NCBI RefSeq assembly: GCF_947568905.1
Contig: NC_079167.1
Span: forward strand, 91,140,001-91,204,000
DNA length: 64,000 nt
Origin: Ostrea edulis
Taxonomy: Eukaryota
Direction: 5' to 3'
Shown: piece after piece, positions 15,001 to 47,990 of the stretch
Layout: each line of letters starts with the position of its first letter
How positions within the stretch are numbered: the first letter of the stretch is position 1
Position numbers and translations under genes: made by a program
Notes under the pieces: generated by a model
Databases searched by the model: none
What the model was told of the DNA's origin: nothing
Seen by the model: the letters and a program-made list of their open reading frames with translations, nothing else

Positions 15001-18000
15001 CAATTTAACGTCAGGTAAACTTCTTATGATGTCATAACAATAGCTCATTTGATAGACTCTGACCTCGATCCACAACCTTTCATGGTCAATTTTTACACAG
15101 GGGTTTACATGGAGAAATGTGTGTATAAATGACGGCGAATATACATTGTTAACTGGTGCATGGAGATGCAATACTATCTATAATTCAGAGAACTATCTCC
15201 AACTCATTGAACTGCAATTTAATTAATTGTATGATGGGTTATATAACTATCCATAGATGGGTTATAGAACTACATGTATCTCCAATTCAATGATTGCAAT
15301 TTAATAAATCTAATTTAAAATTACTGAATATAACTTGATTTAAAAGTTATTGATCGATAACATTGATGCTCAATAAAACTTTTATTTTATTACAATTCGT
15401 TATAATTCTCATTTCAAAAATTAAAAAAGAAACAGATAGACATCTACTTCTGAAGATTTTAATAATTTTAAGTCGACTCGTAAGTTACATTGAATTTGTT
15501 TGAAATGTTTACTACATCATTTGAATTATTTTGAAATTCGAATCTGATAAAATGAAAAGAAAAATCTCATGATCACAAGATTATTTTGTCTAACTTTTAT
15601 ATGATGTTTACTAATAGTGATTGATTGTAGTTGATCTAGATAAAGCTTAGGGATTCATTAACATGCACCACCTTGCCAAGTTTCCCCGTACTCTGTTATA
15701 ATTCCATGAGTTTTAATCAGTAAATGGACATCAAAGTTGAAAGTCTGATGAAATGCCCCGTAGCAGGATTTCCATCATAAATGCTCAAAATATCAGATGA
15801 GATCAAATCCCTACGTGTGTGTGGTGAGAGAGAGATTAAGGACAGACTGCTTAAATTCCCAGCAAATAAAAGCAGCGAAGTGATAGGATATCAACATTAA
15901 AATTTCATACACAACGGACGCAGCAGGATCCTCGAAGCCGCTCCCGTCGTAGGGATCCGGGTTAAGTCCTCAGCACCCCTTGCTTGTAAGAGGCGAATGA
16001 ATAGGACGGTCCTTCGGATGAGACCGCAAAAATTGAGGCCACGTGTCACTACAGGTGTGGCACGATAAAGACCCCTCCCTGCTCAATGGCCATGAGCGCC
16101 GAGCATAGACCTAAATTTCGCAGCTCTTCACCGGCAGTGGTGACGTCTCCATGACGTAAACAATATACCATCAATTAAAGCTGCAACTTTTCAAAAGAAA
16201 AAATGAAGGTAACGAAAAGCGATCAATCTCATACATCCTATAAAGAACACAGAATAGAGATTAAGACAAATACCAATCAAACTATGATTCGCTCACGTAT
16301 TTCGTACAGGTAAGCATCCCCTGTTGACCGGTTGTTTGCTTTACTTCCCTTCGAGAATTTTTCACTCGTATTGAAACGTCACCAGCTCTAGGTAAGGTTC
16401 CACAAATTTACATGTAGACCTACATGTATGATCTGCGCTCAGGGTCGTAGCGGTGAAGGATTTTTAACGTGCAAACGCCAGTCGTGACAAGAGGCCTTCA
16501 TTTTAAGGTCATATCCGAAAAGACCCATGATTCTCATTTCTAAACGTCAAGCGTTTGGGTAAGGAGCAATTACAACTACGTGTATCTTAACGTCTTAGGT
16601 TTGACGCGATCATGGCACGAGCGGGGCTTGAACTCGCAACCTTCCGGTTACGAAGCGAACTCTCTAACCGTTGTTGACCGATCACATCCGCCGTGAGCCC
16701 AATATCAACAAAGTAATATGTACTCAATGTCAGCGTAAAGAACGGCTTACAAATGCTTATGGAAAACGCCAGACAGCATTCGACAGCATACAGGTTGTAT
16801 TAGCAAATTGGATTGTGAAAGCCCAAGGAACATGACCTAGCAGAGCTGTAGAGAGAAATTCAATCAATCAAGAAAAATGTCCTCAATTATTGCAATGTTA
16901 CATGTACATGAAGAAAAAAATGTGATAGAGAAATTTTTTAAGGCAGGATCAAGCTGAATTGGTGAATTATTTCACCTTTATATTAACTAATGTGTATTTT
17001 CCTAAGTGTCGAACTGTGTTTAAGATAGCAAAGTAAAGTCTTGATCAGCGACTTTGCTGCAAACTGTGACATCACAATATCACGTGACCATTATTCAACA
17101 TTCATTTCCGAATGACCATATCTATGATTTTGCAAACACACGTTCGACTTAAAATTTTCTCTTTAGAGAAGTTGACAGGCACAGACTACCGGTACATAAT
17201 TATGTACATCCACTTCTCTTCGCAAATGTCGGAACCGGTAACGGTTCGCACTTCGACCGACGTTTACACTCAAATATGGCCAAATTTATTTAACAGACAG
17301 TTAACTTTAACTGTTAATCCATTTTCATATGTTCCCGTCCCGGGTTTAATGATATGAATCTCTATTGGCGGTCGAAAAAACTCGAACATCTGAGGTCAGA
17401 TAATTTGGAAATATTGATAAGCATGCATTTTGGTTCTGTAAAGCTTACCGTTTTGATTCTTGTAGATACCAATAGGAAAATATGTTTGAATAATAATGAA
17501 ATGGCAAAAACCAAAAACAAACCGAGAAGCAAAATACGTATTTACTCATTTTTACAAATTCGACTTCGGATTTTCGATTCTATTCTACCGCTAATAGAGA
17601 TAAACACATAATTCAAAGTCGTAATTAGTAACATGTGAACATGGATTATGATTAACAGCAAGTAAATGTTGATTTTCCTTGTGACAGATGCATGCATTAA
17701 TGTTAAAGTTGTGGGGAAAAAACTTGTCTGTTAAATAAATCCAGGTATACTCGAGTTGAAACGTAAATCGAAGTTAAAATCCTATTCGGTTCCGACATTT
17801 ACACATTTTACCAGAATCAAAACATGAAGGTTTGCGAAGAGAGGTGGATGTAGGCCATATCTGTCTATTTCTCTAAAGAGAATAACATACGACTGTTGAA
17901 ATACGTTTTCAATCCTGACCACAAACTTTGACGATGCCTTCGATCCATGGTATACGAGCACCGCCACAAGGTGTAAGACGGTTCATAATAGCACGCGTCA

Positions 18001-46779: not shown

Positions 46780-47990
46780 AAACAACAGTCAGAAGACGCT
46801 CGCCGGGAAGTATGACTATACAGTCTGCTTAACATATCCCCTTTAGTTCAAGAGGTTGATGTTTTTGAAAAATATATTAAAGTCCAAGGTCACAAGGTCA
46901 AGGGTTTTTATACTATATCAAAGACCTAGTCACGAGACATCTGAATATGAAATATCAAATCCCTATCCCATGGCTTCAAAAGATATAGCAAAGGTTAATG
47001 TTGTTTGAAAAGTAGGTCAAAGTCCCTGGTAAATAGTTCTGGTTCCAAAAACAATGTCTTGTATTGAGGTATCTACATTTGAAACACTAAAGTCCTATCA
47101 CACTTGGATCAAAAGATAAAACCACGTTTTTTGAAAAGTAGGTCAAAATTCAGGCAAAGGTCATTAGGTCAATATCTTGGTACTAAAACAAAGGTTTCTT
47201 CATGAGGCATCTAAATGTGAAATAGCAAAGCCTTATCCCTATTAATTCAAAAGCTATAGCCCAGGTAAATGTTTTTAAAAGGTAGGGTAAAGTCCAAAGT
47301 GAAGGTCACAAGGTCCAAAGTTTTGGTACCAAACGAAAAGTATCTTCATTAGGCATATAAATGTGAAATATCAAAACCCTATTCCTCTTGGTTCAAAATA
47401 TATAGCCCAGGTTAAAGTTTTTTTTTTAAAAGTAGATCAAAGTTCATAGTAAAGGTCACTAGGTCAAAAGTATTGGTATCAAAAGAAAGGTATCTTCATG
47501 AAGCATCTATACATGAAATATCATAGTCATATCCCTATAACGTATGAGTGGCATATAAAAATACACAATCAATCATATCCCCATTGATTCAAACGATATC
47601 ATCCAGGTTTAATTTTTATTGAAAAAGTAGGTCAAAGTCCAAGGTCATAAGTCTTGGTACCAAAACGAAGGTCTCTTCATGAGGTATTCATATATGAAAT
47701 ATCAGAACCCTATCCCCTGGTTCAACAGATATATAGCTCAGGTTAAAGTTTTTGAATAGTAGGTCAAAGTCCACAGTAAAGATCACTAGGTCAAAAGTAT
47801 TGGTACCAAAAGAAAGGTATTTTCCTGAGGCATCTACATGTATATGTAAACATCAAAACCCTTATCTCCCTTAGTTCAAAAGATATAGCCCAGGTTAAAG
47901 TTATTTCCTTAAAGTGTGACGCCGAAACCGGGGTCATACTAATAGCCTTTCGGACAGTAGAAACTACTGTCCGAAGAGCTATTATTATGC
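46780..47990. mobile_element. HINE/Helentron-like element carrying ~6 tandem ~165-bp satellite units
   Basis: Units aaagtaggtcaaagtcc..aaggtcac..ggtaccaaa..catctaaatgtgaaatatcaaa.ccctat..ttcaaaagatatagcc. Subterminal IR agtatgac (46809) / gtcatact (47933). 12-bp-stem hairpin ttcggacagtag-aaa-ctactgtccgaa (47949-47975). Confidence 0.75.

Follow-up and report, generated by a model that had tools for sequence, protein, structure and literature searches.

Excision footprints of cut-and-paste transposons are usually studied one locus at a time. In the case of Tc1/mariner transposases, the cuts at the 3' ends are exact, those at the 5' ends fall 2-3 nt inside the element, and 2-4 terminal element nucleotides are left between the TA copies after end joining (PMC2170065, PMC6943129). 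Here, the octamer TACATGTA (TA-CATG-TA) was analysed in a stretch of 64,000 nucleotides of the oyster Ostrea edulis (contig C4, positions 91,140,001-91,204,000, referred to as the window) and in the genome as a whole (895 Mb, ten chromosomes). With a probability of roughly 80%, these octamers represent fixed germline excision footprints of TA-targeting elements of the IS630-Tc1-mariner superfamily with 5'-CA...TG-3' ends, and sites read in this way are called scars below. The genome would then most likely hold the record of about 0.3 million past excisions.

The mechanism considered is that of the textbook Tc1/mariner footprint, and what is distinct in the oyster is the +6 CATG product, its uniformity and its scale. 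For Tc1 and Tc3 of Caenorhabditis elegans, a 2-nt stagger at the 5' ends is attributed to van Luenen et al. 1994, as cited in PMC2170065. Their likeness to the oyster sites lies in the duplicated TA target and in the CA...TG ends, and two nucleotides kept per end would read TA-CA-TG-TA. The C. elegans footprints are heterogeneous and concern single loci or reversion events, whereas the oyster displays one uniform product at about 0.3 million fixed sites. Sleeping Beauty leaves the canonical footprint TACAGTA or TACTGTA, a +5 product in which a 3-nt overhang is paired with a central mismatch (PMC6943129); superfamily, TA duplication, CA(G) ends and a preference for ANNTANNT targets are as in the oyster, but the +5 word is not enriched there and the oyster scar is +6. 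The Minos footprint is of 6 bp and consists of four terminal nucleotides plus TA, according to Arca et al. 1997 as cited in PMC6943129. Minos is a Tc1-family element leaving a +6 scar, as would be the case in the oyster. Its ends provide two alternative non-palindromic tetramers via a heteroduplex, unlike the oyster tetramer CATG, which is single and self-complementary. Finally, the donor of ISY100, a bacterial member of Tc1/mariner/IS630, was rejoined to TATATA in vitro (PMC2170065). Its self-complementary 2-nt 3' overhangs, which can be ligated into one exact junction, constitute the likeness; on the other hand, this system is bacterial and was studied in vitro, and its overhangs pair, so that one overhang length is kept. 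In the literature searched, no paper linking TACATGTA to transposon footprints or reporting the word for bivalves was found, and the sole match for oyster excision footprints concerns KolobokP.

In the window, TACATGTA is present 61 times, with 36 copies in an array at 62220-63335 and 25 scattered ones, compared to 2.43 +/- 1.58 (maximum 7) in dinucleotide shuffles. An initial annotation of the window, made by eye, had reported at least 24 octamers outside this array for 2-3 expected, and the recount agrees with it. The array itself is a 34-bp minisatellite with the octamer in each of its 36 copies, and is one word amplified rather than 36 events. Genome-wide, 309,050 occurrences were counted against about 31,000 predicted from base composition (about 10-fold), which amounts to about one per 3 kb and to about 0.4% of all TA sites, while the reversed word ATGTACAT is found 112,547 times. 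The count of ATGTACAT is also about 3.5-fold above its own composition prediction. When 20 random pieces of 10 kb were drawn from the ten chromosomes, each held 0-6 octamers, except for one array piece (L014) with 23, and the 19 array-free pieces together hold 62 octamers in 190 kb, which is the genome mean. Since pieces from all ten chromosomes carry the word, its excess is dispersed and not local. The window density (25 in 62 kb) equals the genome average of 0.33-0.35 per kb, and the repeated visits to this region suggested in the initial annotation are overstated. In a sample of 359 kb, 134 distinct-flank sites were found for 12.5 expected and, when the 16 palindromic TA-NNNN-TA octamers were compared in this sample, none of the other fifteen was enriched to a similar degree. 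Another word, TACTAGTA, was considered as a second scar type (9 copies in the window versus about 1, A at -3 in 62%) and rejected, being at only 1.3 times expectation in the 359-kb sample.

The insertion itself can be read from sister copies of the repeats in which the octamers lie. At 15271-15278, the scar is an exact +6 relative to its local duplicate at 15189-15200, an empty-site paralogue reading agaacTAtctcc, and the repeat spacing changes from 77 to 83 across the site. At 16409-16416, the scar is private to the window copy of a short interspersed nuclear element (SINE): when 30 copies of the SINE containing this site and that at 16421-16428 were aligned, the +6 was present in 1 of 30, the other 29 reading aaattTAgacc with a 6-column gap. 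With an anchored pattern, it was also the sole TACATGTA form at its anchor genome-wide (48 matches versus 62 for the control), this search being otherwise uninformative. The second site of the SINE, 16421-16428, is likewise +6 at a TA, as first described, but is not a private insertion: 13 of the 30 copies have gaccTACATGTAtgc or a decayed form (TACATGTG, CACATGTA or TACATATA), and 17 read gaccTAtgc. This scar is one old event, older than the spread of the SINE subfamily which inherited it. A further SINE copy (L027) bears a third, independent +CATGTA at a different TA, for a total of three separate events in one SINE family. Lastly, the scar at 41945-41952 is located in the last unit of a 41-bp minisatellite (40240-41946, plus strand) of 41.8 copies with 93% matches by Tandem Repeats Finder, which is found nowhere else in the genome. 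It is the lone insertion variant among 14 exact-anchor units, 13 of them reading TACAGTAAATATGACAGTT and one reading TACAGTAAATA, CATGTA and TGACAGTT in succession. The 41-bp minisatellite adjoins an array of 53-bp units (18.6 copies) within 40240-42998, and the GC skew is +0.40 in their 4-kb composition bin.

The comparison of repeat copies for +CATGTA at a TA is thus clean at 15271, 16409 and 41945. At these three sites and at 16421, as well as at sites in L001, L012, L020, L027 and L029, the sister copy has TA where the scar has TA-CATG-TA. Since the tetramer between the TA copies is constant whatever the flanks, it is not locally templated and needs an outside source together with a 2-bp staggered integration. 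The octamer at 47835-47842, in a 150-bp repeat unit, is of ambiguous origin because alignment of its sister units places gaps of 4-5 columns at varying positions, in keeping with its early description as a less clean case. Two octamers in a 31-bp array, at 363-370 and two units beyond at 425-432, result from an A-to-G substitution without insertion, the consensus being TACATATA at 363 with equal length. The octamer at 22267-22274 has ungapped sister copies reading TAGATGTA or TGGATGTA and is either a substitution or an old scar decayed in its sisters, and the one at 56876-56883 is common to a sister copy (L008) without any gap.

A tally of insertions and deletions was obtained from the dispersed repeats by all-against-all comparison of the 359-kb sample. 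The 33 six-bp insertion entries correspond to about 15 independent non-slippage events, and 8 of these are CATGTA at a TA, so that this hexamer is strongly enriched among 6-bp insertions and the lack of enrichment that would have refuted the initial annotation is not observed; a tandem-duplication look was seen in 1 of the 33 entries. No other recurrent TA-X-TA insertion was found in this sample for lengths 2-10, nor any +5 insertion of CAGTA or CTGTA in its repeat alignments.

The bases flanking the scars provide additional evidence. Sleeping Beauty is known for a target preference for ANNTANNT, in which A at -3 and T at +3 are best conserved (PMC8934666). At the 618,100 scar half-sites of the oyster genome, the -3 base is A in 50.1%, C in 10.2%, G in 11.6% and T in 28.1% of cases, compared to 34, 17.5, 17.5 and 31% respectively at ordinary TA sites, and positions -4 to -6 are flat. 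The skew is also seen with 111 masked and de-duplicated sites (A at -3 of the left flank, p = 3e-6; G depletion at +3 of the right flank, p = 8e-5), and no A(-3) skew was noted in TACA, TACAT and TACATG contexts short of the full scar. At 787 ends of a resident Tc1-like family, the -3 base is A in 45.7%, C in 7.4%, G in 12.3% and T in 34.6%. The signature of the scars is the same as that at resident Tc1-like insertions, which is a new finding, and it corresponds to the ANNTANNT preference of Sleeping Beauty. The trinucleotide ATG is also frequent at -3 to -1 (about 20% of the listed A-class Tc1-like ends and, by eye, at scars too), and ATG-TA-CAT may be a preferred target.

This resident family, of the form TA-CAGTCCCTGAA...TTCAGGGACTG-TA, is represented by 787 exact occurrences of its 13-nt end plus TA, many of them paired on opposite strands at a distance of 1.6-1.9 kb, which corresponds to the length of a complete Tc1-like element. 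It starts with CA and ends with TG, matching the letters between the TAs of the scar. The 13-nt end is that of a miniature inverted-repeat transposable element (MITE) in L003, TA-CAGTCCCTGAAACG...CGTTTCAGGGACTG-TA, for whose family at least 1,318 first-look candidates with 85-92% identity were counted, the BLAST alignments ending at the TA. A profile search with PF13358 (DDE_3) returned at least 2,380 first-look candidate loci; 150 of them were scored and none fell below the Pfam cut-off, many having uninterrupted 348-aa frames with identical scores. The genome is thus provided with a TA-duplicating CA...TG transposon and with transposase genes. In addition, a partial transposase gene at L049:2786-3283 (minus strand) covers the C-terminal region and has matches to DDE_3 as well as to the mariner-type Transposase_1 model, with TACATGTA about 280 bp past its stop codon.

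Other candidates for elements with such ends were rejected. The segment at 17205-17854 resembled a MITE of the form TA-CATCC...GGATG-TA, but its homology with L043 runs past both ends (17151-17884) and its boundary is internal to a larger element. The latter, represented by 17151-17884 and by L043:1918-2061, is an old inverted-repeat element with copies 67-83% identical and at least 745 first-look candidates; its outer ends read T(A/T)TTCTCTTTAGAGAA, and its inner inverted repeat mimics a TA-flanked MITE. Likewise, 58606-59735 was examined as a TA-flanked element starting with CA and belongs to a nested palindrome of 1.9 kb. This palindrome is part of a region of nested inverted repeats (58063-61028, palindrome of about 1.9-3 kb) adjoining 40-bp and 48-bp arrays at 60053-60955, with a foldback-like architecture. 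A de novo search for high-copy TA-CA termini in the 359-kb sample yielded, besides the scars, none with three or more copies.

In order to follow the scars in independent reads, contigs of four runs (X1, X5, X8 and X10) from four studies were compared over positions 10,950-16,949 of the window. The scars at 11000, 15271, 16409, 16421 and 16899 are present in the contigs of all four runs without any 6-bp insertion or deletion. In unique sequence, three of these runs show about 0.4-0.7% divergence from the window. These five judged scars are therefore real and fixed in the sample, and the 6-bp presence/absence polymorphism that had been looked for was not observed in these 6 kb and four runs. 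Insertions or deletions reported in the interval are limited to 14 bp inserted at 14788 and to changes of 1 bp at 16517/16518. The former is an insertion polymorphism, TTTCAATTAAATTT, present in 2 of the 4 runs, and is not of the scar type. Regarding age, the copies of the SINE with the subfamily-wide scar are 75-80% identical to the window copy, and the spread of a scar through an old SINE subfamily implies that some scars are old. Moreover, one-mismatch variants of TACATGTA are in excess, above all the four single-transition types, which are enriched 1.6-2.6 fold, as decay predicts. An age derived from one-mismatch variants (mean per-site divergence of about 0.13-0.16) was not relied on, as the A(-3) signature is not clearly common to the variants.

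Taken together, the flank signature and the spectrum of insertions back the interpretation given in the initial annotation, i.e. fixed footprints left by an element of Tc1 type that duplicates TA and has CA...TG termini. Three of its side claims did not stand, namely the local activity discussed above, the absence of any remaining element, since CA...TG Tc1-like elements are resident in hundreds of copies (none of them confirmed inside the window), and the role of a major indel mutator, since about half of the 6-bp insertions not due to slippage are of this type, but only a small fraction of the 286 insertion entries of 3-11 bp tallied. That the scars were made by excision of such elements, and with what cut geometry, we infer from these results, and several observations weigh against it. 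The resident family with readable ends has CAG...CTG termini, for which a 3-nt stagger would yield TACWGTA and not TACATGTA. TACAGTA and TACTGTA are present 275,685 times genome-wide versus 259,832 for the reversed control (1.06-fold). The sole candidate with CAT...ATG ends, at 17205-17854, was lost. No excess of TACATA or TATGTA was found and no longer remnant of the type TA-CA-N-TG-TA (palindromes) is enriched. The product here is thus remarkably uniform, whereas heterogeneous junctions are the rule when overhangs that are not complementary are joined. Internal-transition variants of the octamer are enriched 1.9-2.4 fold without a clear A(-3) signature, which weakens the estimate of decay and age. 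Finally, neither in the 6 kb of the four runs nor among the copies compared was a site found at which one allele or paralogue holds the element and another holds TACATGTA, so that the link between elements and scars is indirect. With regard to TACWGTA, A is found at -3 in 37.1% of the sites and an excess in the window does not hold genome-wide, so that Sleeping Beauty-type +5 scars would be at most a minor population. The lack of TACWGTA enrichment implies either a 2-nt stagger for the CAG-ended family, as reported for Tc1, Tc3 and ISY100, or that another family made the scars.

If the scars are excision footprints, an autonomous Tc1-like element, or a deletion derivative or MITE mobilised by its transposase, would integrate at a TA, duplicating it, with a preference for A(-3)/T(+3) as in ANNTANNT. 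At excision, the transposase would cut exactly on the element boundary at the 3' ends but slightly further in, by a few nucleotides, at the 5' ends, leaving flanks that retain TA and a short 3' overhang of element sequence. End joining would then generate TA-CA-TG-TA, a net gain of 6 bp (CATG and the second TA), and the near-neutral scar may drift to fixation, be copied along within a SINE or a minisatellite unit, and finally decay by point mutation. Different cuts could lead to this product. A 2-nt stagger with full fill-in would best fit the CAG-ended family, as well as the fact that TACWGTA is not in excess; alternatively, a CAT overhang of 3 nt could be joined via AT microhomology, or a CATG overhang of 4 nt would be self-complementary. 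So uniform a product speaks for end joining that is strongly channelled or cohesive. It is conceivable, though on balance doubtful, that donor ends were rejoined via self-complementary overhangs (4-nt CATG, or 3-nt CAT via AT), in a Tc1-like lineage with almost error-free donor sealing. If true, scars would outnumber surviving elements by about 100:1 and form a record of footprints larger than that described in any other genome, from which historic rates of cut-and-paste transposition, target choice and local re-insertion would be directly measurable.

Each scar would also offer two TAs already provided with half of the preferred target, which fits the existence of double scars and of an element sitting in a scar. 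The latter is a Tc1-like deletion derivative of 439 bp at L003:2452-2900 (C2:10,002,452-10,002,900), which occupies the first TA of such a TACATGTA scar with the junction ...ACA-TA[element]TA-CATGTA-TATT. The surrounding region, TATATACA-TA[element]TA-CATGTATATT, resembles a former (TA)n tract that was hit more than once. Among the 787 Tc1-like ends, 15 (12 independent) abut CATGTA, versus about 3-5 expected by our estimate, in which scar TAs represent 0.8% of TA sites and the half-site preference is allowed for. Double scars, TACATGTACATGTA, number 4,988 genome-wide, about twice our own uniform-target expectation. These abutting ends and double scars are suggestive, but not decisive, of re-use of scars or of very local re-insertion. 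At C2:12,299,070-12,299,259, the junction of a Tc1-like element end with TACATGTA is present in four copies 57 bp apart, suggesting a minisatellite that originated from the end of a transposon together with the neighbouring scar.

Among the alternatives, the one deserving most attention is that the scars were made by another TA-duplicating process. This could be a different superfamily that generates TA duplications of 2 bp, or a Tc1-like transposase that was domesticated and uses short non-autonomous elements as substrates. The approximately 0.3 million intact scars far exceed any element family seen (787 ends; at least 2,380 DDE_3 candidates), no scar was traced back to an element, the product is unusually uniform, as if made by a particular type of cut, and candidates for a domesticated transposase are available in the TLEWI genes, which are intron-bearing genes of pteriomorph bivalves and present in oysters (bioRxiv 10.1101/656579). 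However, the scar flanks match those of an ordinary resident Tc1-like family, Tc1 and pogo elements are characterised by CA...TG ends together with TA duplication, and nothing demands a special system; such a process is consequently considered improbable. Repeat dynamics, i.e. slippage of (CATGTA)n hexamers and amplification of the word in SINEs, satellites and minisatellites, undoubtedly multiplied some copies, as in the window array (36), in L014 (23), at the SINE subfamily site and perhaps in the 4,988 double units TACATGTACATGTA. As a general explanation it is very unlikely, given the 134 distinct-flank sites for 12.5 expected and array-free pieces at the genome average; besides, empty sites contain no CATG template for slippage, only 1 of the 33 entries looks like a tandem duplication, and a position-specific A(-3) is not expected from it.

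Still less probable is a functional palindrome maintained by selection, for instance as a protein-binding site. The word is a perfect palindrome, and an oomycete promoter motif is identical to it (PMC11134190), but in the oyster it is inserted inside SINE copies and minisatellite units and evenly spread at about one per 3 kb, and the enrichment of its single-transition variants (1.6-2.6 fold) fits neutral decay. An artefact of assembly or sequencing can hardly be entertained, since independently assembled contigs of the four runs and four studies bear the same scars and nothing was found in its favour. Excision of Tc1-like elements with CA...TG ends therefore remains the preferred explanation of the scars.

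Sixteen of the scattered TACATGTA sites of the window are without a sister copy for comparison. Those at 1301-1308, 3270-3277, 8333-8340 and 10064-10071 are in unique sequence, as are the two fixed in the four runs at 11000-11007, spanned without insertion or deletion by contigs of X1, X5, X8 and X10, and at 16899-16906. The site at 12209-12216 is within a very high-copy repeat (summed word depth of tens to hundreds of thousands), and that at 13186-13193 is spanned by one contig (run X1) among those listed. The others are located at 25871-25878, 26322-26329, 31344-31351, 37809-37816, 48779-48786, 55229-55236, 57161-57168 and 57978-57985. Extremely high-copy repeats occupy 12550-13150 and 15950-16150, where the summed word depth is of hundreds of thousands to about 10^7 compared to tens to hundreds in unique parts; the repeat family ending at 13148 starts with ATGAAAGGTGAAGATAAC, has variable flanks and forms the commonest repeat boundary after the SINE in the 359-kb sample. 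The window further contains two open frames on the minus strand, one of 683 aa at 49986-52034 without Pfam match and one of 199 aa at 37920-38516 matching DUF6451 (E = 8e-19), and an Rfam scan of the window gave no matches. In the sample, a YqaJ/viral alkaline-exonuclease-like frame was noted at L012:1176-1937 (minus strand), and another encoding several zinc fingers of the MYM type (zf-FCS) at L006:6697-8022 (plus strand).

In practical terms, the scars represent a recurrent class of 6-bp insertions and deletions in bivalve genomes, and a palindrome that may otherwise be misread as regulatory in motif or k-mer analyses. Above all, they would amount to a fossil record, across the whole genome, of cut-and-paste transposition, which is otherwise traceless once the element moves. 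Such a record would inform on the frequency of germline excision in the oyster, on target choice, which is ANNTANNT-like and readable from the scars alone, and on the seeding of insertions and minisatellites.

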